Shown here piece after piece: positions 3,269-63,416 of a stretch of 64,000 bases of DNA. The position numbers were made by a program, and so were the translations under genes. The notes below the pieces were generated by a model. The model was not told where the DNA came from. It ran no database searches and saw only the letters and a list, made by a program, of their open reading frames with translations. Positions within the stretch are counted from its first letter, which is position 1, and the number at the start of each line of letters is the position of its first letter. Where the stretch lies: sequence record OP617745.1, one strand, 5' to 3'.

Positions 3269-3859
3269 ATGTATCACAATGAAACAATAGAGCTATTTGA
3301 AATAATCAACTCATTTGAGCCGGAGATGTTAAAAACATTACCCAGTTATGATGTACAACACAACGGACGTTCTTTCAGTTATATTTCAACATATGCAGAA
3401 TCAGAACATCCAATAAAATACAACGAATTTACGGTTAAATGGGTAACAGAAAGGGAAGATGAAGTTGTTCCAACTATTTCAGTTGGTTCTTCAACTTTAA
3501 CATCATTGACTCGTACTTACAATAATGTCAGTACTGATTTATTGAATACTTGTACAGTACTTGTATCAAGTGATTTATCCAGATTGATTTCAGTACAATG
3601 GGAAATGGGCTTGAATAGCAATATGATTTACCCACAGGCTATGATTAGTTCTACAATTATTAAAAAAACAACATCTGAAATGAAATTGATGAATGCATTG
3701 TATTTGCGAAATGAAAGTGTACTAATTAATGGTGTACTTTATGATTTAAATGCAAATGCAAATGCATTCACTGAAGATATTAGTGATGATAAATCACATT
3801 TTTCTATACTAAACGTCATTAATTTAAGGAACATTTTTAATGAATTACGATTGGCTTGA
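3269..3859 (+). CDS. hypothetical protein
   Basis: ORF; start moved to ATG 3269 downstream of the terminator and an AGGTG RBS. Confidence 0.75.
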   Translation: MYHNETIELFEIINSFEPEMLKTLPSYDVQHNGRSFSYISTYAESEHPIKYNEFTVKWVTEREDEVVPTISVGSSTLTSLTRTYNNVSTDLLNTCTVLVSSDLSRLISVQWEMGLNSNMIYPQAMISSTIIKKTTSEMKLMNALYLRNESVLINGVLYDLNANANAFTEDISDDKSHFSILNVINLRNIFNELRLA

Positions 3860-4403
3860 AACCCTTATTAACGAATCATGTAATGCACTAAAAGAATATG
3901 ATATTTCAGTGTTTTTCAATCCACTATTCAATGATCACAAATTTGAATCATTTGATATAGAAAAAAGAGATAATTTTATTATCTTAAAAAATGGTATTAG
4001 TCAGAAAGAAGTCGTGACATATAAAAAGAATTCAAGTCCTTATAATATTAGTACTGCGATAGTTGGTAGTTCCGCGATAAATGGTAATATCAATGTTTAT
4101 AACAAAAATCCATTTCATAATGATTTACCTGATTATCACAGCATTGAGTATGTAAATTACACTTATTCATTTGTTTTCAGACAAGATGGTTTCATTGGGT
4201 TTGATGTAAAGAAAAAATCAGAAACTTTATTGAATATTATTGTTGGAAATAGTGATATTTTGATATACAATGAAAATGGTTATAACTGGTACAACAAAGA
4301 AACATTTGAAGAATTTTCATTTCAAAATTCATTAATTGAACCAAGAAAAAATTTTGATTTATTTTATATTAATTCTGTACTTAAAAATTTTAAATTAGTT
4401 TAA
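3840..4403 (+). CDS. FQxS(T/L) C-terminal-motif family protein
   Basis: TFEEFSFQNSLIE near C-terminus. Confidence 0.7.
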   Translation: MNYDWLETLINESCNALKEYDISVFFNPLFNDHKFESFDIEKRDNFIILKNGISQKEVVTYKKNSSPYNISTAIVGSSAINGNINVYNKNPFHNDLPDYHSIEYVNYTYSFVFRQDGFIGFDVKKKSETLLNIIVGNSDILIYNENGYNWYNKETFEEFSFQNSLIEPRKNFDLFYINSVLKNFKLV

Positions 4404-4413
4404 GGATAATAAA

Positions 4414-4776
4414 ATGTGGTATATTATTAGTGTAGTAGTACTTTCTGTTTTGGTTGGTATTGTATTCCTGAAAGGGGTAACGTATACAATGTCTAAAATA
4501 GACAAGTACCAGGAAAATTCAGTAATCGATTTGTTTATTGATTACCCAAAAAGCATCATTGCTTTTCTATTTGTTATGGTACTGGTTGGTTTTTATATGG
4601 TATCTCATCAAATTGGAGAAATGTATACCTGTGCCATCCGAAGTAGTTCACAGAACGTAGAAACTGAATATAGTTGGTATTTTGATAAATGTCGCTTCAA
4701 AAATAAAGATGGTGCATGGGTAGATATTGATCGTTTATTGGGTATGCCTGATGGCAAAGAACATGAACAACAATGA
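4414..4776 (+). CDS. membrane protein
   Basis: Two hydrophobic helices. Confidence 0.75.
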   Translation: MWYIISVVVLSVLVGIVFLKGVTYTMSKIDKYQENSVIDLFIDYPKSIIAFLFVMVLVGFYMVSHQIGEMYTCAIRSSSQNVETEYSWYFDKCRFKNKDGAWVDIDRLLGMPDGKEHEQQ

Positions 4777-5287
4777 ACATAAATTCTTCATAGAGCCAGA
4801 AAATGAAATAGACTATTTTGATGCATTAGACAGTACTGAAGATGGATATACACATATCAATATATATAGTAAAGGTAAAACTAAATTAGGACGCGATTTA
4901 TCTAATTTTAGTTCCTATAGTTTTACGCTTGAACCATATGGATGGTTTCCATCAGTAGAGTCATTTTATTTCTGGTTTTTAACTGGACAAAAACACCATG
5001 AGCTACGTAAGCTCTCTGGGGCGGCAGCTAAGGCTGCTGCGGAAAAGTATACCAATGACAGGCTTGAGATGAATGAGGAGCGTCTTGGTGTGATACAGGC
5101 CGCTATTTGTGCCAAGATAGTACAGAACCCTGACTTAGCAGAGCGTTTAAAGAAAAGTACTTTAGCTTTTAAGCATTATTATTGCTATGGTAATAAAGTA
5201 ATAAACGTGGAAGATGAACATGGGTGGTTTGTTCAAACAATTGAAGATATAAGGACTGTATTAAAAGAAGGAGATGAACATGAATGA
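4727..5287 (+). CDS. NADAR-family protein (T4 gp30.3-like)
   Basis: LSNF..F......F.SVESF, LSGAAAKAA, AKIVQNPDL..RL.KS...KH pattern; true start probably slightly downstream. Confidence 0.7.
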   Translation: MIVYWVCLMAKNMNNNEHKFFIEPENEIDYFDALDSTEDGYTHINIYSKGKTKLGRDLSNFSSYSFTLEPYGWFPSVESFYFWFLTGQKHHELRKLSGAAAKAAAEKYTNDRLEMNEERLGVIQAAICAKIVQNPDLAERLKKSTLAFKHYYCYGNKVINVEDEHGWFVQTIEDIRTVLKEGDEHE

Positions 5288-6520: not shown

Positions 6521-7012
6521 ATGACTAACGTTAATACCAATCTAGTAACTGATATCAAAAAAGTTATTACTTCTCATCATTTCTTTGCACCAGAAAAACA
6601 ACGAGTCATCTCTGATATCAAAGAAGATGAACTTAGTATTATTATTCGTTTTAAAGAACCTGGTGATGAAATTTCATCACAGTTCACTGTACTTCGTGGT
6701 AAATTCCGCGAAGAAGGCGTTGACAAGATCCCAGCTTACATTCTTTTTATTACACTTGGTAGTGTAATTAAGCTGGAAATTGATGAAAATCTGGAGCGTT
6801 CATATAAATTTATGCTTGCACCAGTTACAGATGATGATAACGTTGAACTGGATTTCAAGAATGATTTCACTGAAGAAGAATTCTTTCAGCAAAGTACAAT
6901 CCATGATTTCCGTTCAGTAACTTATGAACACGTCGAACTTATCAAAGATATGATTGAACCAGTTACCAGTTACGAGAAATATCTCGATGGTCAAGCTGAA
7001 GGCAACGAATAA
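6521..7012 (+). CDS. FQxS(T/L) C-terminal-motif family protein
   Basis: FTEEEFFQQSTIHDF; follows a sigma70-like promoter. Confidence 0.8.
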   Translation: MTNVNTNLVTDIKKVITSHHFFAPEKQRVISDIKEDELSIIIRFKEPGDEISSQFTVLRGKFREEGVDKIPAYILFITLGSVIKLEIDENLERSYKFMLAPVTDDDNVELDFKNDFTEEEFFQQSTIHDFRSVTYEHVELIKDMIEPVTSYEKYLDGQAEGNE

Positions 7013-7636: not shown

Positions 7637-8059
7637 ATGACATTACATGAAGTACTGAATAGTTTCTTTGAATTGAATATTTCAGAAATGAAAACCAAAC
7701 AAAATAGACACCAACATAGTGTTTGGTATGATGCCCAACCACAACCGTTTTTAATCAATTTTAAAGAAACAGAAACATACACAATAATGAGATTTCATCA
7801 TTTTGATGGTGAAAATAATTACAGGGTATCATATGATGCAGGAACTGATCGACTGATTTACACAGTAATGGGTACCATTTCATCAACCATTACGATTGGA
7901 AACTTCTCTTCTTATAAATCAGAAGATAATTTTTTTCAGGATTCACTGATTAATGATTACAATGATTTATCATTCGAAGATATTGACAAAATGATGAATA
8001 TGTTCTATAATGTAAAAAATACAAGTTTATCCCTATTTGGTGAAGATGATGAAATTTGA
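7637..8059 (+). CDS. FQxS(T/L) C-terminal-motif family protein
   Basis: SEDNFFQDSLINDY. Confidence 0.8.
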   Translation: MTLHEVLNSFFELNISEMKTKQNRHQHSVWYDAQPQPFLINFKETETYTIMRFHHFDGENNYRVSYDAGTDRLIYTVMGTISSTITIGNFSSYKSEDNFFQDSLINDYNDLSFEDIDKMMNMFYNVKNTSLSLFGEDDEI

Positions 8060-8486
8060 TTTAGAAAAATTTCTGGATTTGGATTTAGATTCATTTTATA
8101 TCAGAAAGTTTATTTTTAAACCACACACAAATGTGGTTGATTATGCTGTGATTGAACTACATGAATCGGATTATACAATTTGGTACGATGTTGATGATTG
8201 TATTCAACTAAAGGAATGTGATGAATGTAAAGGTTATGTTCTGTTGTATGACCTCAATACAAATGAAATTACATTAAAAACTTCACATTATGATGAATAC
8301 GGTATTATAACAAGACGTGAATGTGTTGCATTTTCACATGATGATTACACAGAAGAATCATTTTTTATGATTAGTACCTTACATGATGTTGGGGAATTTA
8401 CATTTGAAACTTTCGATAAATTTAATAAAATTTTGAAAAAGATTAAATCAATGATCAAGGAAATTGAAAATGAACAGTCCAAGTAA
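8037..8486 (+). CDS. FQxS(T/L) C-terminal-motif family protein
   Basis: YTEESFFMISTLHD. Confidence 0.8.
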   Translation: MVKMMKFDLEKFLDLDLDSFYIRKFIFKPHTNVVDYAVIELHESDYTIWYDVDDCIQLKECDECKGYVLLYDLNTNEITLKTSHYDEYGIITRRECVAFSHDDYTEESFFMISTLHDVGEFTFETFDKFNKILKKIKSMIKEIENEQSK

Positions 8487-8883
8487 ATGTTATATTGTTA
8501 TTCGTAATGATTTGGATATGCCAGAAGGTAAATTTGGTGCACAAATCGGCCATGGCATCGACGCAGTATGGAAAGAGGTTTTGGTAGCCGGTACGATGGT
8601 GCGTGCTGCAAATATAGCCAATGAGCAACCAAAAGAGCGTGATATCAAAATACAGGATGAAATTTCTAAATGGGTAAGTGACGGTAGTAGAAAGATTATT
8701 CTAAAAACAAAATCAGAAGACGAATTACTGAAAATTTATAAAAAGGTATTGTCTGAAGGTTGTATTTGTACTAAAATTTATGATTATGGATTTAATTTTT
8801 TTGATGGTTTAACTTTAACTGGTATTGTTGTACATCCATGTTCAGAAGAAATTAAAACATTAAAACGAGTACGCTTATGGTAA
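8464..8883 (+). CDS. peptidyl-tRNA hydrolase type 2 (PTH2)
   Basis: YIVIRNDLDMPEGKFGAQIGHG, RKIILK, IYDYG...F...TLTGI, L..L.L C-terminus. Confidence 0.88.
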   Translation: MKMNSPSKCYIVIRNDLDMPEGKFGAQIGHGIDAVWKEVLVAGTMVRAANIANEQPKERDIKIQDEISKWVSDGSRKIILKTKSEDELLKIYKKVLSEGCICTKIYDYGFNFFDGLTLTGIVVHPCSEEIKTLKRVRLW

Positions 8884-9251
8884 ATGAACATTTAAAAGAA
8901 TTATGTTCTTTATGGAAATCATCTGATGTAAGATTTGAACCTGTACCCAAAAATAAAGATAACTGGCATAATTCTATTGTTATTGGGTCTTGTGGTTTTT
9001 TTCTTTTACCTATTGTACTAAAAGATAAAAAAATAGGTATTGTTGTTTTATACAATGATATTATATATTATTTTTTGTACGAAGATGAAATTCAGTACGT
9101 ACATAATAATATGACACATACATATAAAAGAGATACCACACATGAAGAACTATTCCAACTAAGTACTTTATACGATGGAGTAATTCAGTACGAAAACTTA
9201 ATAGAAGTTTTTAACTTATATGATTCCGTAATGGAGGTAATTGAAAGATGA
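8877..9251 (+). CDS. FQxS(T/L) C-terminal-motif family protein
   Basis: THEELFQLSTLYD. Confidence 0.8.
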   Translation: MVNEHLKELCSLWKSSDVRFEPVPKNKDNWHNSIVIGSCGFFLLPIVLKDKKIGIVVLYNDIIYYFLYEDEIQYVHNNMTHTYKRDTTHEELFQLSTLYDGVIQYENLIEVFNLYDSVMEVIER

Positions 9252-9589
9252 TGAGTCATTGTAAATTCTGGCTTCCTGTTATGGTTGTTCTGTTTATTAT
9301 TTTTACAGTAGTAAACTACAAAATCCACAATTCTATCCCAAGACAGCCTACAGCAGAAGAATTAGCTATTCATCAAAATAGTGGTTTATATGCTGAAGTA
9401 CTCAATAAAATCAAAAACAAATGTACTGGTATCAGTGATAATGAAAGGAATACATTCTATACATGTCAGGACGGTTCTAAAGTATCAGTGATTTACTGGA
9501 AACGACAAGATAGAAGTGGGTATGTCACTCGTGATTTTGATAAAAATGGTAAATTAATTTCGATTTATGGACACCCAGATGATATCTAA
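9248..9589 (+). CDS. membrane-anchored hypothetical protein
   Basis: N-terminal TM helix. Confidence 0.7.
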   Translation: MMSHCKFWLPVMVVLFIIFTVVNYKIHNSIPRQPTAEELAIHQNSGLYAEVLNKIKNKCTGISDNERNTFYTCQDGSKVSVIYWKRQDRSGYVTRDFDKNGKLISIYGHPDDI

Positions 9590-10031
9590 AGAACAACATA
9601 AATTTTTATTCAAAATATTGAATTCTTATAAAGTTAATAAGTTCAGTACTAAAAACGTTCACAATCCAAAAATTATTATTATCACAAGGCGATATATAGG
9701 AAATAACAGATTTGAAATACACTTATATAAAGGAACTATTTCATTAGAAATTCAAAGATATGGTATTATTTTATTATTAATTGAGTATAATCCAATTTCT
9801 GACAATATGACGTTATTATTCAATGATAATGAACATTGTTCTGAAATCGTTTATCGTATAAACGATGTGTCGGAAATTCTTGAAGAAGATGGTTATTTTC
9901 AACAAAGTCTTGTACAAAATCTTCCATTGGAATATAATGATTTTTGTAAAATGATAGATGATATCACAACCATCAAAAATTCAATGCTGGAACGTTTTGA
10001 GTTAACAGAGCAAGTGTGCGACAATGACTAA
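9567..10031 (+). CDS. FQxS(T/L) C-terminal-motif family protein
   Basis: LEEDGYFQQSLVQN. Confidence 0.8.
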   Translation: MDTQMISKEQHKFLFKILNSYKVNKFSTKNVHNPKIIIITRRYIGNNRFEIHLYKGTISLEIQRYGIILLLIEYNPISDNMTLLFNDNEHCSEIVYRINDVSEILEEDGYFQQSLVQNLPLEYNDFCKMIDDITTIKNSMLERFELTEQVCDND

Positions 10032-10924: not shown

Positions 10925-11818
10925 ATGTTTATGAAACCTATTACAGTACTGTCATTATTCAATGGGATGAGTGTTGGGTATATGGCACTAAAGAATGCTG
11001 GAATTCCAGTACAGAAATATTACTCATCAGAAATTGATAAATTTGCTATTGCTGAATCACAAGCCAACTACCCTGATATTATTCAGTTAGGTGATATAAC
11101 TAAATGGGAAGATTGGGATATCGACTGGGGTAGTATTGACCTACTTATTGGTGGAAGTCCTTGTACTGATGTAAGTTTTGCGGGAAAACAAGAGGGGTTA
11201 GTGAAACCAGATGAAAACGGTGATGGTGGAACACGAAGTGGTTTATTTTATATAATGATTGACATATTCAATCATATTAAATCGATAAATCCAGATTTAA
11301 ATTTTTTATTTGAAAATGTCAAGATGAAAAAAGAACATCTTGAAGAATTTAATAATAATATAGGGGTTGATCCTGTTCTAATCAATTCTGAATTATATAC
11401 TGCTCATTACAGACAGAGATATTACTGGATTAGCTCAAATAAGCTAATTCTCAATCCCACCTACAAAGCCCCCGTACTTCAAGATATTATTGTTAATGCA
11501 TATACTGACAGGAATAAATCATATTGCATTGATGCCAATTACTGGAAAAAGGGGAATATCACACAGTACTTACGCAAATCAAGAAGACAGATTGTTTATC
11601 TAAGAGACGATCATGATTTATTCAGTACTGAAGAAAAAATTAACACATTTAAACTTAATGTTGATTATCGACATTTAACAGTAGATGAAGTATGTTTATT
11701 ACAGGGTGTACCTGTTGGATTTTTTAAAGTAAGTAGTACAACACAAGCATACAAAATGCTAGGTAATGGATGGACATGTCCAGTTATTGAACATCTATTA
11801 AAGGAAATTTTCTTTTAA
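10925..11818 (+). CDS. DNA (cytosine-5) methyltransferase
   Basis: Motifs SLFNG, SEID, GGSPC (catalytic), FENV, RQRYYW, LGNGW. Confidence 0.92.
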   Translation: MFMKPITVLSLFNGMSVGYMALKNAGIPVQKYYSSEIDKFAIAESQANYPDIIQLGDITKWEDWDIDWGSIDLLIGGSPCTDVSFAGKQEGLVKPDENGDGGTRSGLFYIMIDIFNHIKSINPDLNFLFENVKMKKEHLEEFNNNIGVDPVLINSELYTAHYRQRYYWISSNKLILNPTYKAPVLQDIIVNAYTDRNKSYCIDANYWKKGNITQYLRKSRRQIVYLRDDHDLFSTEEKINTFKLNVDYRHLTVDEVCLLQGVPVGFFKVSSTTQAYKMLGNGWTCPVIEHLLKEIFF

Positions 11819-12061: not shown

Positions 12062-12088
12062 AAAAATCCACCACATGTGGATTTTTTT
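12062..12088 (+). terminator. intrinsic terminator
   Basis: AAAAATCCAC-CACAT-GTGGATTTTTTT. Confidence 0.75.
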
Positions 12089-12109: not shown

Positions 12110-12547
12110 ATGCATAATGAAGAAATAATTCATTTTCTTAAATTTTATTTAAAATGTATGAATGCTGTTCAAAAATTAATGGAATGTGAAATGATTAATG
12201 ATTTTAATGATCATTTTGGATATATAAGTACAGATTTATATCCCGTCCCTGTTCGTGCAAAATGGAATTATGATCAAGATGCATATGCAATGCAACTGGA
12301 TTTTGATTTATTCGGACTTCCATCTAAATTTAATATAGGAACTATTTGTTTTGATAAAAATGATGGTTTGATTTTAATTTGTTATAACAATAAAACAGAA
12401 GTTGATTTAAAATACAGAGAATGGTTAACCGAAGAATCGTTTTTTCAGTCCTCGTTAATATATGATTTTGGTAGTACTGATTTACAGTACTGGAAAAAAT
12501 GCATTGATTTATTTGAAAAGATTGAAGGAGTAATGACAGGTGTTTAA
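12110..12547 (+). CDS. FQxS(T/L) C-terminal-motif family protein
   Basis: WLTEESFFQSSLIYDF.STDLQYWKKC; close paralog of 23195..23644; start moved past terminator. Confidence 0.8.
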   Translation: MHNEEIIHFLKFYLKCMNAVQKLMECEMINDFNDHFGYISTDLYPVPVRAKWNYDQDAYAMQLDFDLFGLPSKFNIGTICFDKNDGLILICYNNKTEVDLKYREWLTEESFFQSSLIYDFGSTDLQYWKKCIDLFEKIEGVMTGV

Positions 12548-12935
12548 AATAAAACTAATTTATACCACCGGTGATACATTCGAAACACGTGAAGTAGAAA
12601 GATTTATTAATTGCGAATGGGATACAGAAGAGAAAGCTATTCATGAAATGAATAAAATCCGAGAGCACTGGATTTTCAATAAAAAAATTAGTTCTACTCG
12701 TGATAAAGGCACAAAGAAGAGATTGGTATCACAAGCTATTATGCAATCATGGTATAAACCTGGTAATTCTGAATATACTATGCTGCTAGTTGATAATGAT
12801 GGGAATTCTTTTGAGATGTATGCTGCATGGTTAGGGTATTTTGAAATTCTTCATAGTACTGAAGTAGTCAATACAAACCAATTAGACAACTATATTGATT
12901 TCGATGAATTAAGATCAAACATGGGATTGTGGTAA
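12540..12935 (+). CDS. hypothetical protein
   Basis: Tiled ORF. Confidence 0.75.
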   Translation: MFKIKLIYTTGDTFETREVERFINCEWDTEEKAIHEMNKIREHWIFNKKISSTRDKGTKKRLVSQAIMQSWYKPGNSEYTMLLVDNDGNSFEMYAAWLGYFEILHSTEVVNTNQLDNYIDFDELRSNMGLW

Positions 12936-13369
12936 TGAATGGTCCAACTGTACTAAAAATCCTTCGTAAATTTAAACACCCAATATTGGTCGGTCGCTGG
13001 AAATCATTAAAAGAAAATAAAAATACCGACGATCAAAAAAATATCAATTATAGATGGTATTGGGATTATTCTAAAGATTATGGTGATTCACTTTGTGTAA
13101 AAATTAAATTCAATAATCATAATAAATGGTCTAGAGATAAAAAATATATATATTCATATGATATTCACTTATCAAAGGAACATGTATTTATTTTTCATAG
13201 AAGTTACAACAAATTTTCAACTAAACATTATGTACTATTTTCTATAAATGAATTATATGAAGATTTAGAAAGTGTGTTATTTCAACAATCGCTGATGACT
13301 TCTACTGGTATGATGAGTACACAAGAAATCGAAGTAATAAGAGAATTAAAAGATATGTATTTTCCATAA
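12929..13369 (+). CDS. FQxS(T/L) C-terminal-motif family protein
   Basis: LESVLFQQSLM. Confidence 0.7.
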   Translation: MVMNGPTVLKILRKFKHPILVGRWKSLKENKNTDDQKNINYRWYWDYSKDYGDSLCVKIKFNNHNKWSRDKKYIYSYDIHLSKEHVFIFHRSYNKFSTKHYVLFSINELYEDLESVLFQQSLMTSTGMMSTQEIEVIRELKDMYFP

Positions 13370-13916: not shown

Positions 13917-13924
13917 AAAAAGCT

Positions 13925-13953
13925 TGACATATAAATTGACAATGATATAATAA
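13925..13953 (+). promoter_or_regulatory. sigma70-like promoter
   Basis: TTGACA...TGATATAAT. Confidence 0.7.
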
Positions 13954-17046: not shown

Positions 17047-17315
17047 AAATTTTAAAACTTCGTGTATCTGATTTTAGTTCAGAAATTTATGTTGGTAACG
17101 ATTTTAGCCCAGATCCTCTCGAAATGCTTGAAAAGATTCGCACTGCTGGTGCTATTGGGACTGAAACAGATCGTACAATGCATTTTATTACTGAATCTAA
17201 AGATAAATTCGAAAAAGCACAAGAAGATGTAAAAAAGCTCTTGACAAAGAATGGTTATGTACTATATAATCCATGTACTGTCCTGATTGATTGTAAGACT
17301 GAGAAGAGAAAATAA
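17043..17315 (+). CDS. hypothetical protein
   Basis: ATGA overlap. Confidence 0.7.
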
Positions 17316-18772: not shown

Positions 18773-18805
18773 TATTAAGGAGACTACTAATAGTCTCCTT
18801 TATTT

Positions 18806-19704
<899 letters not shown>

Positions 19705-21407: not shown

Positions 21408-21503
21408 GCGGGTGTGGCGGTATTGGTTGTACGCAAAGGTCTTAAAAACCTTCAGAGGGCTTAAAATGCATTCCTCTTGTGAGTTCGAATCTCATCACCC
21501 GTA
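21408..21503 (+). tRNA. tRNA-Leu (UAA)
   Basis: GCGGGTG/CACCCGT acceptor, AAGGT-CTTAAAA-ACCTT anticodon arm, long variable arm, GTTCGAATC T-loop; CCA not encoded. Confidence 0.92.
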
Positions 21504-21523
21504 CTCATTAAATAGTCAATGGA

Positions 21524-22357: not shown

Positions 22358-22391
22358 TACTTAATTATTCAGTACTAAATACACCAACAAA

Positions 22392-22467
<76 letters not shown>

Positions 22468-22472
22468 AATTC

Positions 22473-22568
22473 AACAGGTAGTAACGCTCTTAGGTGTACA
22501 TTAATATAGGAATAAGGGTTAACAGTACTGTACACAAACGAGTAACCCCGAAAGACCCGAAACCTGTT
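22473..22568 (+). ncRNA. pseudoknot-containing structured RNA candidate
   Basis: AACAGGT/ACCTGTT closing stem, GTGTACA/TGTACAC stem, loop GGTTAAC complementary to downstream GTAACC. Confidence 0.5.
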
Positions 22569-22578
22569 AAAGTTTTAC

Positions 22579-22628: not shown

Positions 22629-22636
22629 TATTTTAT

Positions 22637-22821: not shown

Positions 22822-22830
22822 CTTTTAATT

Positions 22831-23644: not shown

Positions 23645-23700
23645 TCACAGAACGGTTCAGCATTTGGTAGTATGTTTGACTGAATAAAGCATAAACGTGT

Positions 23701-44878: not shown

Positions 44879-45409
44879 ATGAAACACTGGTCATATAAAA
44901 AAAGGTTAAAGAAGAATAAATGGTATCCAAGATATGATTACATACCATGGGTATCGAGTTTTGCAAGATTATCTGCTTTATCTAAAAAATGTACTATTAA
45001 TAAATTTCAAGTAAGTGATATAAGCACTAAAGGCGTATATAAAGTAAAAGTTAACCCAAATGATGAAATTGGTATTTGTTTATTGAATTATAATGAATTT
45101 AGTATTAACTATATATCTTCTGCGGTGAAATATTTAAATATACTAAGTACTAATTATGAATTTTCAGATTTTTTTACTGGAGACCGCCGACGTATAATTT
45201 GCACTAAATCTTACGAAAAGATTTCTAATGATATAGATTTTTCAAATTTAACTGAAGAGGAATATTTTCAGTACAGTACGTTATATGATAATCTTGATGA
45301 TTTAGTTAAACTTAATACATTGTTTAAATGTATTGAAGAAAAAACCAAAGACAAATTTACATTAATGAATTTTCTACGTGGAATTCAGAAATTTGAGGCT
45401 GAACAATGA
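44879..45409 (+). CDS. FQxS(T/L) C-terminal-motif family protein
   Basis: LTEEEYFQYSTLYD. Confidence 0.8.
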   Translation: MKHWSYKKRLKKNKWYPRYDYIPWVSSFARLSALSKKCTINKFQVSDISTKGVYKVKVNPNDEIGICLLNYNEFSINYISSAVKYLNILSTNYEFSDFFTGDRRRIICTKSYEKISNDIDFSNLTEEEYFQYSTLYDNLDDLVKLNTLFKCIEEKTKDKFTLMNFLRGIQKFEAEQ

Positions 45410-45813: not shown

Positions 45814-46097
45814 TGAAAACTGTCACAATCAAAGAAATCCAAAATAATTGGCAAGATTTAATTGAATTTAAATATAATTTTGAAGAATACAAGAAAGATA
45901 CAGCGGCAAGAAATGCTTTAAATTCTGCATTTGGTTGTAAGTTAAAAGCAGCATTCTGTACTGTATATCCTGCTGTGACAGTTGATAAAACAGGCATCGA
46001 TTTTGGTGCAGCACGTATTATTTTCATTACAGAGAAAGGTGATGTAAGAATGATCTCTTCTTCTGAATGGGGTGGTATCAGTAATAAATTAAATTAA
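45813..46097 (+). CDS. hypothetical protein
   Basis: TAATG coupling. Confidence 0.7.
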   Translation: MKTVTIKEIQNNWQDLIEFKYNFEEYKKDTAARNALNSAFGCKLKAAFCTVYPAVTVDKTGIDFGAARIIFITEKGDVRMISSSEWGGISNKLN

Positions 46098-46109
46098 AGG
46101 TATATTTCC

Positions 46110-46598
46110 ATGAAACCAAATAATGTTATTGTTAATGTTCCTGAATTCCATAATGTCGTTGTGCAAGGAAAGGATTATATGACATTGGGATGTTGTGGAT
46201 ATGAATTGTTTACAGTACTAAAAGACCATAAACAAGATGATCGTCATCATGTTATTGTACAAAATAATGGATATCTTTGTACCATTGATAATAGTACAAA
46301 TATGCTTGCAGAGAATCCAACAACAATTCAAAAATACTTAATTGAAAATCACGGTAATGACGCTGGTTTATTCTCTTTCAGTGACATGACAGAAGAAGAA
46401 GCAAATAGTTTTATTCCCATTGATCAAAATAAAAACGCACCTGTAGTATTTTTATACGAAGATGATGCATTCATTTATCGTGACAAACTTTGTATTCTCA
46501 TCAATGGAGAAGAAAAGTCTTTTCATGAAATCAGTGCGGATAAGAAATATATTTTTACTGTAGTACTCAATCGCATTACTGAAGTACTGATGGATTGA
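46110..46598 (+). CDS. hypothetical protein
   Basis: AAGG RBS. Confidence 0.75.
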   Translation: MKPNNVIVNVPEFHNVVVQGKDYMTLGCCGYELFTVLKDHKQDDRHHVIVQNNGYLCTIDNSTNMLAENPTTIQKYLIENHGNDAGLFSFSDMTEEEANSFIPIDQNKNAPVVFLYEDDAFIYRDKLCILINGEEKSFHEISADKKYIFTVVLNRITEVLMD

Positions 46599-46602
46599 TA
46601 TT

Positions 46603-46640
46603 AAAAATGGTTGACTTTATGTCAACCATTTTGTTATTAT
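46603..46640 (+). promoter_or_regulatory. fused terminator/promoter cassette
   Basis: AAAATGGTTGAC-TTTAT-GTCAACCATTTT-GTTATTAT. Confidence 0.75.
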
Positions 46641-46673
46641 ACGCATATATTAAGTCAATAAGGATTTATTTTA

Positions 46674-46976
46674 ATGAAAAATAAATTAGTGCTTACTATC
46701 ATTTTTTTAATTCCATCAATCCCTTCATATGCAGGTAAATTGAGTGAGCCAGTTTGTGAAGTACGAGTATGTAATAAAATTTCTCGTTTTTCTTTAGATA
46801 TTATGTCACATATTAAAGATAAAATGGGTGAGAAATGTGATACTGTATTATTACCCAAATCAGAATCATATGTTGGTAATGTATTATCATCAGAAAGTCG
46901 TTGGTATCAAGGTAGTTCTATCAATCCAACAAAGAAATCAGTGACGAAAGTTGTAGAAGTACTTGAATGTCAATGA
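46674..46976 (+). CDS. exported Cys-containing protein
   Basis: Signal peptide ending SYA; 4 Cys. Confidence 0.75.
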   Translation: MKNKLVLTIIFLIPSIPSYAGKLSEPVCEVRVCNKISRFSLDIMSHIKDKMGEKCDTVLLPKSESYVGNVLSSESRWYQGSSINPTKKSVTKVVEVLECQ

Positions 46977-46995
46977 TTAATAATTTAAAGCCAAC

Positions 46996-47023
46996 AAAAG
47001 GTTGACTTCGGTCAGCCTTTTTT
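46996..47023 (+). terminator. cassette hairpin without -10 box
   Basis: AAAAGGTTGAC-TTCG-GTCAGCCTTTTTT. Confidence 0.8.
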
Positions 47024-47026
47024 CTA

Positions 47027-48414
47027 TTGGTAAATATTAATGATAACAAAGAATCAAGGATGATTTTTATGGCAAAGAAAATTACACAGAAGGAAGCTGA
47101 AGAACGAGTAAAACAAAAGTGCTTGGAGAAAGGATATACGTGTGGAGAATTCGTTTATATTGGAAATGATAAAACTTTTTTACCTCTAACGTGTGATAAA
47201 AATCATTTTTGGAATACCACACATTATAATAACTTTATGATGAAAAATAAAGGATTATGTCCAATATGTTTGGGTAGATATAAAACTACTGAAAGTTTTA
47301 TTCAAGAAGCAAAACAAAAAAGAACTGATTTGAATTTTGATTATAGTAAAACTGAATATGTAGATAGTAAAACAAAAGTTTGTATAATAGATCCAGATTA
47401 TGGTGAATTTTGGATTACTCCTGGTAATTTTTTATATGGTTATGGAAATAAACAAAGAGCTATAGATAGAGTTCATGATAAACAACGTCACAGTACTGAA
47501 GATTTTTTAATTAAAGTTAAAGAAAAGAATTTCAATATTAATTATGATTTTAGTAAAACTGAATATGTTGATTCAAAAACTAAATTATGTATAATTGATC
47601 CTGAATATGGTGAATTTTGGATTACCCCGCATAGTTTTTTGAATGGCAATTGTCACAAAGAACGAGGTAAGCAAAAGAGTAGAGAACTATTTGCTTTTAG
47701 TACTGAAGAATTTATTATAAAAGCAAAAGAGAAATTTCCTGATATAGAATATAATTATAGTAAAGTTATATATAAAAATAACAGTACTAAAATTATAATT
47801 ATAGATCCAGATTATGGTGAATTTAAAGTTACACCCGCCAGCTTTTTTAATGGTTCGTGCCATCCAATAAAAAGAAAAGAAATAAGAAGAAAAGCTAAGA
47901 TTAAATCATCAGAACAGTTTATAAATGATTGTAAAAATAGATTTCCTGATATTAATTATGATTATAGTAAAGTTGATTACAAAACTGCAAGAACAAAAGT
48001 TACTATAATAGATCCAGAATACGGGGAATTCAATATTACTCCTAATAAATTTTTAAGTGGTCAAAAACATCCAAATCATTCTATAACTGGATATAATCAA
48101 TATTCATCTGGATATTTTTATATCAATAAGATCATATATATTATAAATTTGGTATAAGTAATAATTATGAAAAAAGATTTAAACAATATAATACAAATTA
48201 TTTAGAATCATTAAAATATAAATGTTTTTATCATGAAGATGGTTCTATTATTTTTAATATAGAATCAATTATTAAAAAGAACAAAAAGATAAAAAGAAAA
48301 GCTTTACCTAAAAATATTTTTAATGATGGTTATACTGAAACAATACATGAATCAAATTTAACTGATATTCTTGATATTATAAATGAATATAATTTAATAG
48401 AAGTACAAATTTAA
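47027..48414 (+). pseudogene. homing endonuclease with repeated DYSK.....IIDPDYGEF modules and frameshifted GIY-YIG-like C-terminus
   Basis: ORF stops at 48157, but another frame continues YKFGISNNYEKRFKQY...NDGYTET...* to 48414, matching the C-terminus of 61304..62218. Confidence 0.8.
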
Positions 48415-48480
48415 GTTGACAATGAAGAATCTATATGATATAAATATGTTCATATAGATTAAACTATAAGGAATTTAGTA

Positions 48481-50151
48481 ATGCCAAATGATAATGGAGA
48501 TATGAAACACAGGAATGGTGCATTAGTGCAACATTCCAGTAAATGGGCTAATGATCGTAGACCCAAAAATTCATACGCAGCAGGATCTGGAAGCAAAGCC
48601 AGTCGTAATCAGGGATATGGTCAACAAGGTATTGATAATACAAAACCATCCGACGAAATAGATACAACAAAAATGTCACCTGATCAAAAATTAAAGTATT
48701 TTCAAAAACTCGGCTTATTAAAACCCGATGAACCGAAGGAACAACCCAAACAAAACACACAATCAGAACCAAAACAACCAGAAGTAAAAGAACAACCTAA
48801 AACTAATCCAGTAAAAGAATTATCTGATAAATTAGGTAAAATTTTCGCTAATAAACCACAATTAATTCAGGGTATCGTGAAAGCATTACAATCTGTGCCG
48901 AAAGAACAATTAAAAGATAAAGCACAAGCTGTACTGAAAGCTATGAATAACAATACCAGTACTGAACCAACTGAAGTATTCAGTACTGTAATGCAAGCAA
49001 TTGAAGGTTCTCCTGAAAAGGATGAAGATGATATTGATTTCGATGAAAAAGAACCAGTTAAATCTGAACCAGAAGAAGGTTCTATTGACTGGATTCGTAA
49101 AATACATAAGTTTGTTTTTGATAAGTATTTTAATCAAGATTTTGATAGTTATAAATCTTATAGGGATTTACTAAAAAATAAACACGATGCTAATATTTTT
49201 CAGGATTATCTTGAAAAAATGGAAAAAAATCCAAAAATCAAACCATTGTATGATCTAGCTATGCATAAATTAAATGACTTCGATCCAGAAGAAGGTGAAG
49301 ATTCTAAATTCATTAACATTGGTGACGCAGTATTCAGTATCATCAAAGATGGTGAAAATGTACAACAAAGTTCTGGTGCTGAAGAAAGTGATAAGTACGC
49401 TCAAGATTATGAAAGAGAAGAAGAAAAAAGTCGTGATCTAGAACGTCAGTACAGTACTATGTCAGAGAATGATTTTAGAAAAGATTTTCATTTCTTAGAT
49501 AGTAAAGATGTAGAAGCATTAATTAAACAAGCTAAGCAATTCAAAAATTATCAATCAGCACTATCAGCTATTGCTTCGGGTGTTGATAATAGCACAGATG
49601 GTGATAACAATGAAATTCTTTCTTCCATGTATGCTATCGCTGATGATTTAGATAGTATGGGATTTGAATTGAAAGATAACGATAACAGTACTTCAGATAA
49701 TAATGAATATGGTTTTGTTATGTCTCCAGAAGAATTATCATCTACTGGAAAACATAGTTATAATAATGATCCAGAAGTATATCAACAGCCAACATTGGAT
49801 GATGCCTTAGTACTTGCACGTAAACATGCAGCGGCTGCACGTAAAGAAGATTTTGATAAATTCTTGAAATATGTAGCTGATGGTATGAAAGAACAGGGTA
49901 CTAAACCAGCAATTATTAACAGAACTCTTAGTCATTATATGCATGAACTAAAAAATAATGGTTTTAAATTTCAATCTGCACTAAATTCTATGGTAGATAA
50001 TGCCGAGGCTTATGATCCAGATGATGATTATGGTACTGAATTTGACCACAACATAGCTTCATTTGAAGGTGGGATGGAAAACTACGATAAAGATCAATCA
50101 AAATATGAAGATCAAATAATTCACGTTTACAATCAATTACACGGAAAATAA
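48481..50151 (+). CDS. 556-aa acidic, low-complexity hypothetical protein
   Basis: Own promoter at 48416; P/Q/K-rich linker, D/E-rich helical body. Confidence 0.85.
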   Translation: MPNDNGDMKHRNGALVQHSSKWANDRRPKNSYAAGSGSKASRNQGYGQQGIDNTKPSDEIDTTKMSPDQKLKYFQKLGLLKPDEPKEQPKQNTQSEPKQPEVKEQPKTNPVKELSDKLGKIFANKPQLIQGIVKALQSVPKEQLKDKAQAVLKAMNNNTSTEPTEVFSTVMQAIEGSPEKDEDDIDFDEKEPVKSEPEEGSIDWIRKIHKFVFDKYFNQDFDSYKSYRDLLKNKHDANIFQDYLEKMEKNPKIKPLYDLAMHKLNDFDPEEGEDSKFINIGDAVFSIIKDGENVQQSSGAEESDKYAQDYEREEEKSRDLERQYSTMSENDFRKDFHFLDSKDVEALIKQAKQFKNYQSALSAIASGVDNSTDGDNNEILSSMYAIADDLDSMGFELKDNDNSTSDNNEYGFVMSPEELSSTGKHSYNNDPEVYQQPTLDDALVLARKHAAAARKEDFDKFLKYVADGMKEQGTKPAIINRTLSHYMHELKNNGFKFQSALNSMVDNAEAYDPDDDYGTEFDHNIASFEGGMENYDKDQSKYEDQIIHVYNQLHGK

Positions 50152-50152
50152 T

Positions 50153-50189
50153 AAAAAGGGTTGACTTCGGTCAGCCCTTTTGTTATTAT
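50153..50189 (+). promoter_or_regulatory. fused terminator/promoter cassette
   Basis: AAAAAGGGTTGAC-TTCG-GTCAGCCCTTTT-GTTATTAT. Confidence 0.8.
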
Positions 50190-50216
50190 ACATCCAAACA
50201 AAATAGGAATACTACA

Positions 50217-50609
50217 ATGTCTTTAATTAAATTGGAAACTCATATCGCTGCTATCGAATCCATGATGAAACAACTGGATGTTCTTGAACTGACAACTGAT
50301 AGTCCAGTACTGAATCATTGTCTCAGTCTTGAAGATATGGGTGAATTGGGTAATGGTATTGAAGCAATTCGCCGTAATCTGAATAATGCTAAAGAATGGG
50401 CTGTTGAGCAATATAATACACAAGTGTTGCAATTATCGTACACTACCAACAAAGGTGATTTTGCTCGTTTTCATGGTACTAAAGATGAACTTCGTAAATT
50501 CTGGAATTCATCAAAAGATAATATGAAGTACGTTGAAATCTATTACAATTATTCTCGTGCTCCAATATGTGGTGATAAAGCTGTTGGAATATTTTTATCC
50601 ACATATTAA
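50217..50609 (+). CDS. hypothetical protein
   Basis: AGGA RBS. Confidence 0.75.
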   Translation: MSLIKLETHIAAIESMMKQLDVLELTTDSPVLNHCLSLEDMGELGNGIEAIRRNLNNAKEWAVEQYNTQVLQLSYTTNKGDFARFHGTKDELRKFWNSSKDNMKYVEIYYNYSRAPICGDKAVGIFLSTY

Positions 50610-50611
50610 TT

Positions 50612-50648
50612 AAAAAGGGTTGATTTCGGTCAGCCCTTTTGTTATCAT
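50612..50648 (+). promoter_or_regulatory. fused terminator/promoter cassette
   Basis: GGGTTGAT-TTCG-GTCAGCCC..TATCAT. Confidence 0.75.
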
Positions 50649-50693
50649 ATCAGTACTTAATATATAATTTTAATTTAAAAGGATATCTTACTC

Positions 50694-50930
50694 ATGATGG
50701 TATCAGTACAACCGTATGTAAATGGTACTTTTGTCCTTAAAATCGAAAGTGGTTACAGGACTGGTTTATTCGTTAGTAAACCAAAGCTCAATGATACTGA
50801 TATAGAATTTCCAGAAACATTCAGTACTGAAACAGATGCATTAAATTGGGCAATTGAAAATGGATATCAAAAAATTAAAATAAACAGCACGATTGAATTA
50901 AATTATGGAGTTCGTATAAATGCAAAATGA
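50694..50930 (+). CDS. hypothetical protein
   Basis: AAGGA RBS. Confidence 0.7.
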   Translation: MMVSVQPYVNGTFVLKIESGYRTGLFVSKPKLNDTDIEFPETFSTETDALNWAIENGYQKIKINSTIELNYGVRINAK

Positions 50931-51282
50931 ACAAGAGAATCAAGAAAAGAAAAAACTAGATACTAATGATTATAAAATCTTACATATCGCCTTACAAAAA
51001 ATCATGGAAGGTGAACGTAATGAAGATTATGGCATTTGTTATAATCTACAATCTAAAGTACTAAACTATATTGAAAAACGATTCATTTATCAATTCCTTC
51101 AAGAATCACTAAAAAGTATTCTTGGTGGTAAATGTGGTCAATATCCAATTGAAGGGTCGTATGAAGATTTCAAACGAAACAATGAAAAATGGAATACATT
51201 TACTGAATTCGGATTTAAGCGTTTAAATCTACTCAAATCAATGATTGAACGTACTGAAAAACTTTCTTTGGGAGAAAAATAG
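50920..51282 (+). CDS. hypothetical protein (paralog of 55469..55900)
   Basis: GIC.NL, YPIEGS, RLNLL.SMI shared. Confidence 0.75.
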   Translation: MQNEQENQEKKKLDTNDYKILHIALQKIMEGERNEDYGICYNLQSKVLNYIEKRFIYQFLQESLKSILGGKCGQYPIEGSYEDFKRNNEKWNTFTEFGFKRLNLLKSMIERTEKLSLGEK

Positions 51283-51704
51283 TGTCCAACTGCCCACACT
51301 GCAATAAAGAATTAAAAATTGACTACTGTGTATATATGAATGTAGAGACTTATGGTAAATCCGCATTAGCAACATCTAAATGTTGTGGGCGTGCTGTGGT
51401 GGTTTCTCGTGTAGTCAACTTTGGTATCAGTGCTTATAATGGTGAACGAACTGAAGATGATTGGGGTAACAGTATTCTACCAAAATCTAATGTACCACAA
51501 AGCAATATCAATGATGAACTTGCTATCAATGTTGTTGAACTTCTAAAATCAGATAGACGATATGAAGCACTTGAAGTTATTCGCAGCATCAAAAATCCAC
51601 TGACTGCTGGTTGGCTTGTACAAGAAGTATTAAATGAATTAAATGTTCCGAGTCGTACACAAACAAAAAACTGGCTAATTAATGCTCTTTATAATGGTAA
51701 ATGA
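51282..51704 (+). CDS. hypothetical protein with N-terminal zinc ribbon
   Basis: CPHC...SKCCG. Confidence 0.7.
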   Translation: MSNCPHCNKELKIDYCVYMNVETYGKSALATSKCCGRAVVVSRVVNFGISAYNGERTEDDWGNSILPKSNVPQSNINDELAINVVELLKSDRRYEALEVIRSIKNPLTAGWLVQEVLNELNVPSRTQTKNWLINALYNGK

Positions 51705-52024
51705 TTATGTTTGAATTATACAGATTCGCTGGAATTGCTATTGTTTTATTGGGATTTATGTATATTTTAATTTGCCTTTTGTTGAAATTTTTCAAATACA
51801 ATACATTATTGAATAAAATTTTTCCAAAAGGAATTGATGACATAGACAGAGACTGTTGTTTAATTGCTTTTTCTATATTTGGATTATGTTCGTTGTTTTT
51901 TGATATATCGGTACCAACGGCGTGCGTAAGTGCATTTCTTTCTTCTATAATTTTGTTTGTATTAATTGTATGTTTAGCAATTAATGTGCTAATTTCATTT
52001 CATAAAAAATTACCAGAAAGGTAA
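51701..52024 (+). CDS. membrane protein
   Basis: 3 TM; similar to 63547..63894. Confidence 0.7.
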   Translation: MIMFELYRFAGIAIVLLGFMYILICLLLKFFKYNTLLNKIFPKGIDDIDRDCCLIAFSIFGLCSLFFDISVPTACVSAFLSSIILFVLIVCLAINVLISFHKKLPER

Positions 52025-61287: not shown

Positions 61288-61305
61288 CGAAAGTCAGCCT
61301 TTTTT
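61275..61305. terminator. cassette hairpin without -10 box (probably bidirectional)
   Basis: AAAAAAAGGTTGAC-GAAA-GTCAGCCTTTTTT between convergent genes. Confidence 0.75.
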
Positions 61306-62218
61306 AAATTTTAATTCCACCAAATCTTTCATATATTTCTATAATTTTATTAAAATTATAAGCATATGTAGTTTCCGTGTATCCATCTTTCATATTTTCT
61401 TTTTGTATTATTCCTTTACCAAATATTTGTTTGCATTCTTTTTCGGCATTTTTACAATCATTGATTGATTCAAAATAATAAGAAGTATGATGTTTAATAT
61501 AGTATATAGATCTACAATTTTGTTCTTTTACACGTTTACCTTTTATGTTTTCAATTCCATATTTCAAACCAATAATTTCATTTTCATATTCAATTGTATG
61601 AATATAGGAATAATGTTGACAATGCAATCCTCTAACTGGATGACCTTTACCTTGTAAAAAACTATCAGGTCTAATTTCAAATTCACCATAATCAGGATCA
61701 ATAATAATTACCTTTGTTTTGTTGTTTTTATAATCTACTTTACTATAATCATAATTAATATGCGGTTGAACTTTTTTAGCTTTTTCAATAAATTTTTCAG
61801 TATTCGATCTATTAGTTATTCCTCTATCTGGATGCACTCCACCTTGCAAAAATAAATTTGGAGTAATATAAAATTCTCCATAATCTGGATCTATAATACA
61901 AATAGATTTTCTATTATGTTCATATTGGACTTTACTATAATCATATTCAACATCCATTCTTTTTGATTTAGCTTTTTGTATAAATTTTTCAGTACTACAT
62001 GTTTTTGATTTAATTCTTTTATTTTTACCACGTTCAGGATGACCTTGTTTCATACTCAAAAATGAATTTGGCTTTATTAAAAATTCTCCATATTGTGGAT
62101 CTATAATTATAATTTTAGTTCTATTATTAATATATACTGTTTTACTATAATCAAATTCCACATCTGTTCTTATTCTTTTTGCATCTATAATAAATTCTTC
62201 TTGTGTTTTTCTACGCAT
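61304..62218 (-). CDS. free-standing homing endonuclease (repeated DYSK..IIDPDYGEF modules plus GIY-YIG-like domain)
   Basis: Three repeats, then YIHTI..LKYGIEN..KRVKEQN..DGYTET; the only long minus-strand gene. Confidence 0.82.
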   Translation of the reverse strand: MRRKTQEEFIIDAKRIRTDVEFDYSKTVYINNRTKIIIIDPQYGEFLIKPNSFLSMKQGHPERGKNKRIKSKTCSTEKFIQKAKSKRMDVEYDYSKVQYEHNRKSICIIDPDYGEFYITPNLFLQGGVHPDRGITNRSNTEKFIEKAKKVQPHINYDYSKVDYKNNKTKVIIIDPDYGEFEIRPDSFLQGKGHPVRGLHCQHYSYIHTIEYENEIIGLKYGIENIKGKRVKEQNCRSIYYIKHHTSYYFESINDCKNAEKECKQIFGKGIIQKENMKDGYTETTYAYNFNKIIEIYERFGGIKI

Positions 62219-62325
62219 TATTATAATCTCTTTGTCAATATATAAAAATATTTAGTTATGATGGTTTTTGTGCTTGACAATTTTTTTTATATAAGTTATT
62301 ATGTTGTTATTGAATGAAGAGGTGA

Positions 62326-63102
62326 TTGAAAATGCATCCACGCCTAGAAAAAGCACAACAAATTCAAAAAAACTTCGATTCCATGATGAGTGCTTTGGAA
62401 TGTCTTCTTGATTATAAATCAACTATTAACTCTCTTATTATTTGTGGTAAGGGTGGTTGTGGTAAAACATACAATGTAGAAAAGCGTCTCAAAGAAGCTC
62501 ATGACCGTGCTGAAATTAACTTCACTTCTATTAGTGGTAAAGTTAGTACTATGGGTTTGTATGAAACATTATATAAAACTCGTAATAGTACTGATGTATT
62601 AGTACTTGATGATGTTGATGTATTCAATTCAGAAGCAAATTTTGATCTATTAAAAGCAATCCTTGATACTTCTGATGAACGTGTTGTATCATATGCTACA
62701 ACAAATAAACATCTAAAAAATAATGGCATTCCAATGTCTTTTGACTATCGAGGTAAAGTCATATTCATCACAAATAAAGATTTGTCAAAAATGGCAAAAT
62801 CTAATACAAAATTAGCACCACATGTTGATGCATTACTAACTCGTTCTATTTTTGTTGATCTTCAAATTTTTAGCAATGAAGAAGTTATGATTCATATTGA
62901 GAATATTATGCTCAGTACTAATATTCTCAAAAATTATGGTATTAATCAAAGTGGTTCAACTCAAATTATGAATTGGATGTTGAAACATGAATCAAAATTA
63001 CGTTCTCCATCATTACGTATGCCAGTACTGATAGCATCATTGTATAATAAATTCCCATATGATTGGGAAGAACGATGTGAAAACTTATTCCTGGAGAAAT
63101 AA
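62326..63102 (+). CDS. AAA+ family ATPase
   Basis: Walker A GKGGCGKT, Walker B VLVLDDVD, VIFITN sensor, ALLTRS arginine finger. Confidence 0.88.
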   Translation: MKMHPRLEKAQQIQKNFDSMMSALECLLDYKSTINSLIICGKGGCGKTYNVEKRLKEAHDRAEINFTSISGKVSTMGLYETLYKTRNSTDVLVLDDVDVFNSEANFDLLKAILDTSDERVVSYATTNKHLKNNGIPMSFDYRGKVIFITNKDLSKMAKSNTKLAPHVDALLTRSIFVDLQIFSNEEVMIHIENIMLSTNILKNYGINQSGSTQIMNWMLKHESKLRSPSLRMPVLIASLYNKFPYDWEERCENLFLEK

Positions 63103-63416
63103 TGAAATACAAATGTACAGTGTATAAAGAAGGTATTGTATTCATAGAAGTCTATGTAGATGATGATATTTGGTTTGAAGTTGATGAATGTTTTGATACA
63201 AATGTATACGTATCAAAAAATGGATATATCTATGAATATAATTTAAATCACGATTTTGGTTCAATGCAAGATGATGAACTATTTCAAATGAGTACTGTAA
63301 TTTCTATTCCTTTTGATTTAAAAATCATTAGAGAAGCCCATAAACAATTCAGTACTATTATAAAAGAAAATTCATCATTATTGTATCATTATATATTAGT
63401 AACAGAGGACGAATAA
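63102..63416 (+). CDS. FQxS(T/L) C-terminal-motif family protein
   Basis: MQDDELFQMSTVIS. Confidence 0.75.
   Translation: MKYKCTVYKEGIVFIEVYVDDDIWFEVDECFDTNVYVSKNGYIYEYNLNHDFGSMQDDELFQMSTVISIPFDLKIIREAHKQFSTIIKENSSLLYHYILVTEDE

Follow-up and report, generated by a model that had tools for sequence, protein, structure and literature searches.

A multigene family of small proteins with a constant C-terminal module in RaK2-like jumbo phages

The stretch of DNA analyzed here (the window; 64,000 nucleotides) comprises positions 62001-126000 of record OP617745.1, the genome of Klebsiella phage KP13-7 (357,701 bp; genus Alcyoneusvirus, a RaK2-like jumbo phage). Its G+C content is approximately 30%, and its + strand holds almost all of the genes. 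Sixteen of its open reading frames (ORFs), encoding proteins of 104-187 amino acids (aa), share the C-terminal motif (T)E(E/D)xxF(Q/M)xS(T/L)(L/I/V)xD; they are true genes, and all belong to a single old multigene family in jumbo phages of the RaK2/121Q type. In these proteins a constant C-terminal helical module is joined to N-terminal parts that are specific to each paralogue; of the roles considered for this module, the likeliest is that of a structural keystone, constant between members, in a small alpha/beta fold which all of them would share. Positions given below are those of the window unless referred to the record.

Membership and distribution of the family

The motif was described in an earlier note, made from the letters of the window alone, as a feature of at least 16 small proteins. 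All 16 proved to be real, and their translations are exactly those quoted there. The first 14 are annotated in KP13-7 as "hypothetical protein" coding sequences (CDSs), and the remaining two (44879 and 63102) were taken from the ORF list of the window; the starts 8037, 9567, 12929, 18806 and 19213, by which the note named five of the ORFs, are alternative starts upstream of the annotated ones. A strict form of the motif was matched 14 times in the + strand ORFs, as compared to 0.46 matches expected from within-protein shuffles (maximum 4 in 1000); when a preceding acidic residue was included, the figures were 14 and 0.11. Three strict matches were found in the three - strand frames. Leave-one-out profile hidden Markov models (HMMs) recovered 13 of the 16 members. 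An independent HMM, constructed from 63 outside relatives and 13 window members with 12929, 18806 and 3840 left out, detected the first of these three with E = 3.4e-7, the second with E = 3e-3 and the third with E = 0.63, and hence supports 15 of the 16; the exception, 3840, is the weakest member of the family. Upon iteration all 16 passed a threshold of 1e-3, a value reached by no other ORF of the window and by none on the - strand.

It is practically inconceivable that no real family exists and that the motif arose by chance or from the composition of an AT-rich genome, or that it is an element conserved as DNA which falls within coding sequence. Low G+C does inflate Phe, Asn, Lys, Ile and Tyr, but a chance origin is refuted by the shuffles, by recovery with both types of HMM, and by the occurrence of the strict motif in 80 of 90 fetched relatives. 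A DNA element is refuted by the variation of synonymous codons at the conserved residues: Ser is encoded by 13 TCN and 27 AGY codons, which indicates that selection acts on the protein and not on the DNA, and Gln by 17 CAA and 24 CAG codons.

The members in the window are the following (the Phe codon is that of the invariant motif residue).

3840-4403, + strand: annotated CDS, 187 aa, weakest member; Phe codon 4320; independent HMM E = 0.63, at or below 1e-3 only on iteration
6521-7012, + strand: 163 aa; Phe codon 6884; leave-one-out E = 1.7e-9; phrog_23322
7637-8059, + strand: 140 aa; Phe codon 7934; leave-one-out E = 1.6e-9; phrog_24941
8046-8486, + strand: 146 aa; earlier start 8037, a TTG farther upstream; Phe codon 8364; recovered by leave-one-out HMM; phrog_24510; AlphaFold model m94d34c12bfaa
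8877-9251, + strand: 124 aa; Phe codon 9153; leave-one-out E = 1.3e-8
9579-10031, + strand: 150 aa; earlier start 9567; Phe codon 9897; leave-one-out E = 4.1e-5
12110-12547, + strand: 145 aa, closest paralogue of 23195; Phe codon 12443; recovered by leave-one-out HMM; phrog_21500
12935-13369, + strand: 144 aa, basic (pI 9.3); earlier start 12929; Phe codon 13280; independent HMM E = 3.4e-7
18818-19216, + strand: 132 aa, Leu in place of the motif Ser; earlier start 18806; Phe codon 19097; independent HMM E = 3e-3
19225-19704, + strand: 159 aa, basic (pI 9.6); earlier start 19213; Phe codon 19528; recovered by leave-one-out HMM; phrog_22160
23195-23644, + strand: 149 aa, among tRNA genes; Phe codon 23531; recovered by leave-one-out HMM; AlphaFold model mf74f71ad5b05
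26353-26769, + strand: 138 aa; Phe codon 26665; recovered by leave-one-out HMM; phrog_17453
27042-27449, + strand: 135 aa; Phe codon 27351; leave-one-out E = 8.7e-4
27442-27831, + strand: 129 aa; Phe codon 27712; recovered by leave-one-out HMM; phrog_27994
44879-45409, + strand: 176 aa, basic (pI 9.0), apart from the main array; from the ORF list; Phe codon 45266; recovered by leave-one-out HMM
63102-63416, + strand: short member, 104 aa, with an N-terminal part of about 54 residues; Phe codon 63282; leave-one-out E = 1.9e-3; HMM E = 7.3e-7

While "at least 16" holds for the window, it is an underestimate for the genome. A scan of the whole record yielded 42 members, 7.6% of the 556 annotated genes of KP13-7, with lengths of 61-214 aa; the 61-aa member is encoded at record positions 154695-154880. 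Forty of them lie within record positions 65840-183494, and two further members are found at 256134-256532 and 321573-321995; none was detected in the upstream replication module. Beyond the 42, a handful of borderline ORFs carry the motif.

A search with a family HMM, which the earlier note had proposed for phage databases, was carried out exhaustively against 1.84 billion cluster representatives and returned 83 of them at E <= 1e-3. With few exceptions these are 120-170 aa long, and most match the full length of the profile; in none of the 83 is the module fused to another type of domain, and all display one layout and a similar size. The breadth of the family was revealed by this exhaustive search, as word-indexed protein searches with family alignments retrieved only 7 and 8 proteins. 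In one metagenomic protein of 329 aa (P0049) two stretches match the family profile, which we interpret as two copies fused in tandem within a single chain. Relatives were identified by Foldseek and tblastn in phages 121Q, PBECO4, GAP32 and CBB and in Yersinia phages fHe-Yen9-03 and fHe-Yen9-04; orthologues of member 8046 in 121Q-type coliphages are about 30% identical to it. In a pattern scan of IMG/VR, all confirmed relatives resided on large contigs; nine of these measured 345-371 kb and two were shorter (94 and 174 kb), and the density reached up to 10 members per 20 kb. One metagenomic contig carries 13 members in 20 kb, adjoining a gene of the PTH2 type of peptidyl-tRNA hydrolase, as in the window. 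Confirmed occurrences of the family are restricted to large contigs from jumbo phages of the RaK2/121Q type.

The earlier note had recognized no named domain in the motif, and searches of Pfam, NCBIfam, PADLOC and the sequences of the PDB yielded nothing above noise for the family; in Pfam, no family was matched at E <= 1 by 10 members or at E <= 0.01 by 76 relatives. PHROGs splits the family into about 25 groups of "unknown function" (including 23322, 24941, 24510, 21500, 17453, 27994 and 22160). It was previously noted that approximately 10% of the RaK2 gene products are paralogues (PMC3622015), and in the papers that were searched or read we found no description singling out this family of small proteins. 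The family is new as a named entity; in general terms it is a giant-virus expansion specific to one lineage, which is a known kind.

The constant module and the divergent N-terminal parts

The composition of the motif was determined by counting residues from the Phe (position 0) in 44 KP13-7 members.

Position -5: Thr/Ser, 28/44
Position -4: acidic, 40/44
Position -3: acidic, 39/44
Position 0: Phe, 44/44
Position +1: Gln, 41/44; Met, 3/44
Position +3: Ser, 40/44
Position +4: Thr, 28/44; Leu, 16/44
Position +5: Val/Ile/Leu, 40/44
Position +6: Tyr/His/Phe, 29/44
Position +7: Asp/Asn, 29/44

Two window members deviate from this pattern, 18806 by a Leu at +3 and 23195 by a shift of one residue. 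Hydrophobic residues at -1, 0, +4, +5 and +6, and often at +2, cover most of the circumference of the motif helix, which suggests that it is buried, either in the monomer or in an interface. A Ser or Thr followed by acidic residues is a known helix N-cap (capping box) signal; the Thr/Ser and acidic residues of the motif, with a helix starting there, fit such a cap. The motif had been placed about 20-50 residues from the C-terminus; the distance from the Phe to the end is 27-58 residues in the 16 window members and 27-84 (median 44) in the first 40 members, in which the Phe itself is located at residue 18-162 (median 107.5).

When subfamilies were compared by HHalign, the C-terminal ~40 residues were found to be homologous between subfamilies, with a probability of at least 50 in 94 of 153 pairs and of at least 95 in 32. 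For the N-terminal parts a probability of 50 was reached in none of the 153 pairs, the same result as in a reversed control. By phmmer, no N-terminal part matched that of any other KP13-7 paralogue, and outside the family only one borderline match, to a non-family ORF, was obtained; against PHROGs, matches of N-terminal fragments were confined to their own PHROG, and a leave-one-out HMM of the N-terminal parts detected no homology among them. These data substantiate the earlier description of the N-termini as barely alignable. An HMM built from the N-terminal parts of distant relatives nevertheless ranked those of the window collectively above + strand decoys (Mann-Whitney p = 6e-4), which may be taken as a faint sign of common descent of the whole protein. 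When orthologues were grouped into subfamilies by full-length BLAST, the underlying loci originating from several phage genera, identity within the larger subfamilies was 20-30% in the N-terminal part and 30-50% or more in the C-terminal part. This retention of N-terminal identity indicates that the paralogues are old and individually maintained, and do not form a currently hypervariable cassette.

AlphaFold models were generated for member 8046, from an alignment of 13 paralogues (predicted local distance difference test score, pLDDT, 65), and for member 23195, from an alignment of 76 relatives (pLDDT 73; predicted template modeling score, pTM, 0.67). Both display the same layout: an N-terminal helix, five to six antiparallel strands, a short motif helix and a long amphipathic terminal helix, in agreement with the earlier prediction of a beta-rich upstream part followed by a helix. 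The motif helix follows immediately on the last strand, with no linker between them, and according to DSSP starts 4-5 residues before the Phe. The C-terminal module is modeled with high confidence (pLDDT 87-96). Superposition of BFVD models of other subfamilies gave template modeling (TM) scores of 0.40-0.54 over 107-157 columns; the model of the RaK2 protein H6X3Z3 (140 aa; taken by its length as the orthologue of 7637) matched that of member 23195 with a TM of 0.51. As these superpositions exceed the ~45 residues of the module, a common overall layout across subfamilies is likely as far as the models go, and we infer that the fold is one throughout the family.

Foldseek comparison of a member model to the PDB yielded nothing significant. 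The best match by E-value was p32/gC1qBP (E = 0.2, TM 0.21, root mean square deviation 14; not significant). The family resembles p32/gC1qBP/MAM33 in the order of its elements (an N-terminal helix, antiparallel strands and two C-terminal helices) and in that its members are mostly acidic; membership in MAM33/p32 was rejected, given a TM of 0.21 (threshold 0.5) and the lack of a Pfam MAM33 match, and the resemblance is one of topology only. The SUKH/immunity-protein, Bet v1/START, roadblock/longin and lipocalin-like folds, which were also considered, were not among the Foldseek PDB matches.

Expression, genomic context and candidate partners

Sequences matching the sigma-70 promoter consensus in at least 11 of 12 positions occur 29 times on the + strand of the window (eleven of them 12 of 12) and twice on the - strand, as opposed to 3.1 in shuffled sequences. 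The + strand matches span positions 5942-63719 (for example, 7983-8011, 13924-13951, 17241-17270, 22190-22218 and 26698-26726), and several are located directly 5' of family members. In the arrays, genes frequently overlap by a few bases. Judged by the promoter matches, the whole window looks like a region transcribed early, by the host RNA polymerase; a similar region of phage CBB has been proposed to be early (PMC5259590). A sigma-70-like factor (regions 2 and 3) is encoded at 34712-35608; in CBB, the presumed early region has its sigma factor in the same position.

The family proteins are small, soluble and usually acidic: the pI is below 5.5 in 29 of 40 members and five are basic, and no transmembrane segments were found in the 40. 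In the RaK2 record the label "virion structural protein" denotes detection by mass spectrometry and is carried by 54 proteins, among them the products of the neighboring ORF175 and ORF182. In this one proteome the label was assigned to none of the 14 orthologues of the first array, and it is likewise missing from all 64 genes under the second array.

Several other genes are interspersed with the family. The PTH2-type peptidyl-tRNA hydrolase gene lies inside the array at 8470-8883 (8771-9178 in the same neighborhood of the metagenomic contig), as does a C-5 cytosine DNA methyltransferase gene at 10931-11818 (Pfam, 108 bits); a DNA_methylase gene is also present in the array of the metagenomic contig. 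A tRNA cluster at 21408-24805, with six annotated tRNAs (Leu, Gly, Arg, Ser, Ser, Asn), surrounds member 23195-23644. A 376-aa ORF at 47027-48157 has borderline matches to the papain-like peptidase families C39 and C58 (approximately 22 bits, at the cut-off). The sole sizeable gene on the - strand, at 61304-62218, encodes an HNH-type endonuclease (phrog_681/559), probably a homing enzyme, directly upstream of the AAA-like ORF listed below. Five other pairs of paralogues, all small + strand ORFs unrelated to the family, were identified (39126/40261, 41923/54353, 44560/57781, 50920/55469 and 43532/44187). Terminator-like hairpins are enriched between 3000 and 20000 (17 as compared to 4.9 expected; for example, 12062-12086 and 18777-18800), two of them being symmetric and scoring on both strands. 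Positions 46000-52000 are a variable spot between close relatives: the region is 65-71% covered in RaK2, K64-1 and Muenster, and the remainder is 96-99% identical.

The earlier note had suggested that the family could deliver its targets to a common partner and had named the products of two ORFs in the window, 34136 and 62326, as candidates for a protease or an AAA+ ATPase. Both turned out to be weak. ORF 34136 belongs to a PHROG of unknown function and displays no Pfam match and no ATPase or protease signature. The match of the other, which is not a member of the family, is marginal:

62326-63102, + strand: AAA-like ORF, neighbor of the family; Pfam AAA 22.6 bits (cut-off 21.2), DUF815 23.3 bits (cut-off 23.8); phrog_1250, unknown function

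Its end overlaps the start of member 63102 by one base. A complete ClpA-like Hsp100 ATPase, with Clp_N, two AAA modules and D2-small, is encoded elsewhere in the phage genome, outside the window (record 304464-306773). Its identity to the corresponding protein is 75% in phages of the 121Q type and 56-65% in the Erwinia and Yersinia relatives. The phage also has genes for two ClpP-family proteins, at record positions 129002-129634 and 209678-210379 (81 and 135 bits, cut-off 20), and one family member lies approximately 300 bases downstream of clpP_1. ClpA- and ClpX-type ATPases usually dock to ClpP through a loop carrying the tripeptide [ILVM]-G-[FLM]. This tripeptide is found nowhere in the ClpA-like ATPase of the phage, so that a phage ClpAP-like protease is not assured.

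Possible roles of the family

One possible explanation for these observations, which we prefer to any other single account while giving it slightly less than an even chance, is that the members act early, in the cytoplasm, as binder proteins built around a constant helical keystone, each paralogue having surfaces of its own. Each protein would combine its own N-terminal part, a helix and a beta meander of five to six strands in the models, with the shared two-helix module. The latter would open with a helix-start signal (Thr/Ser followed by acidic residues) and continue with buried aromatic and aliphatic residues packing on the sheet, while the divergent sheet and N-terminal surface would endow each paralogue with a binding specificity of its own. 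The phage would thereby possess a set of proteins, expressed early and located in the cytoplasm, that bind or inhibit different host (or phage) molecules stoichiometrically and may be used in host take-over or counter-defense.

A number of points weigh against this explanation. In the N-terminal halves of the models confidence is low (pLDDT 33-68), and neither HHalign, between subfamilies, nor phmmer, between paralogues, detected similarity of the N-terminal parts. The burial of the motif is putative. The wide variation in the length of the N-terminal part, with the Phe anywhere from residue 18 to 162, is odd for a single fold, as is the 61-aa member, which contains little beyond the module; packing alone would not account for the near-invariance of the polar Gln and Ser. 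The binding function, too, is one that we infer.

An additional scenario, put forward in the earlier note, is that of an adaptor array, in which the module is a putative docking element for one partner, such as an AAA+ protease of the phage or the host, and the variable N-terminal part brings the target. We regard this as possible but unlikely. The sharp contrast between the module and the N-terminal parts (94 as opposed to 0 of the 153 subfamily pairs at an HHalign probability of 50) speaks in its favor, as do the near-invariant polar residues (Gln in 41, Ser in 40 and the acidic pair in approximately 40 of 44) and the occurrence of the module with N-terminal parts of very different lengths, down to the 61-aa member. 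The phage also encodes the well-conserved ClpA-like ATPase and two ClpP-family proteins, with one family member close to clpP_1 and another overlapping the end of the AAA-like ORF; the Clp genes are, however, common to the whole clade, and their co-occurrence with the family does not discriminate. The absence of a linker between the sheet and a motif helix that is hydrophobic nearly all round, as well as the compactness of the second model (pTM 0.67), argue against docking. The same is true of the failure of the module to appear with any other domain type in the 83 representatives, of the lack of relatives of the N-terminal parts outside the family, of the lack of Pfam matches to the F-box, SOCS box, ClpS or SspB, of the missing [ILVM]-G-[FLM] tripeptide in the ClpA-like protein, and of the lack of an ATPase or protease signature in ORF 34136. 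The part of the proposal that describes a constant module combined with a variable one has therefore held, and the docking part is putative, the evidence on the mechanism, including the compact linker-less models, leaning slightly against it. The specific version in which the module docks ~40 paralogue-specific putative binder domains and thereby hands host proteins to one machine, possibly the phage ClpA-like ATPase with the ClpP-like proteins, appears rather unlikely. It is also improbable that the module serves for oligomerization, its helical hairpin bundling copies into homo- or mixed oligomers with the variable parts facing outward. A two-helix module which is hydrophobic on most faces, together with a long amphipathic last helix, does resemble helical-bundle dimers; such a role would account for strong conservation without an external partner, and P0049 has two copies in one chain, but the monomer model is already compact. 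Least probable of the functional alternatives, and very much so, is that the proteins are packaged in the virion or ejected from it, the shared segment being a capsid-targeting signal as in internal head proteins or encapsulin cargo. A short constant segment on a variable body would suit such a signal, and the small neighbors RaK2 ORF175 and ORF182, of the same region, were found in virions; this is countered by the complete absence of the virion label from the orthologues and second-array genes of RaK2, and by the strong sigma-70 promoter context, which points to early expression.

The docking scenario would be a phage counterpart of eukaryotic or poxviral F-box-type adaptor arrays. The family is indeed similar to F-box, SOCS-box and poxvirus PRANC (ankyrin with an F-box-like segment) proteins in the presence of many paralogues per genome and in the combination of a constant helical C-terminal module of about 40 residues with a variable part. 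It differs from them in that no sequence or profile similarity was found (Pfam; 10 members and 76 relatives), in that its variable part does not consist of a repeat domain, and in that, in the models, no linker intervenes between module and sheet. The setting of these proteins is different as well, since bacteria are not known to have a ubiquitin system. ClpS and SspB, which deliver substrates to an AAA+ protease, are small, as are the family members, and the phage has ClpA-like and ClpP-like genes for a candidate AAA+ protease; no profile match to either adaptor was obtained, and the tripeptide usual for docking to ClpP is missing from the ClpA-like protein. As a large multigene family arranged in co-directional arrays and restricted to a single clade of jumbo phages, the family is comparable to the RaK2 paralogues and to the zinc ribbons of Bacillus phage G, of which there are approximately 35 copies (PMC7824862); unlike the latter, it has a different fold and contains no known domain.

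About one gene in 13 of these 350-kb phages belongs to this one unnamed family, and naming it trims their "dark matter". The family also constitutes a natural series, in which one constant module is combined with approximately 40 old, individually conserved variable parts, so that data on the structure, expression and distribution of a few members would be informative on all. Should the module prove to be a docking element, no large adaptor repertoire would have been described in a bacterial virus before this one; should it be a scaffold, the family would represent a new small fold serving as a binder platform in host take-over.

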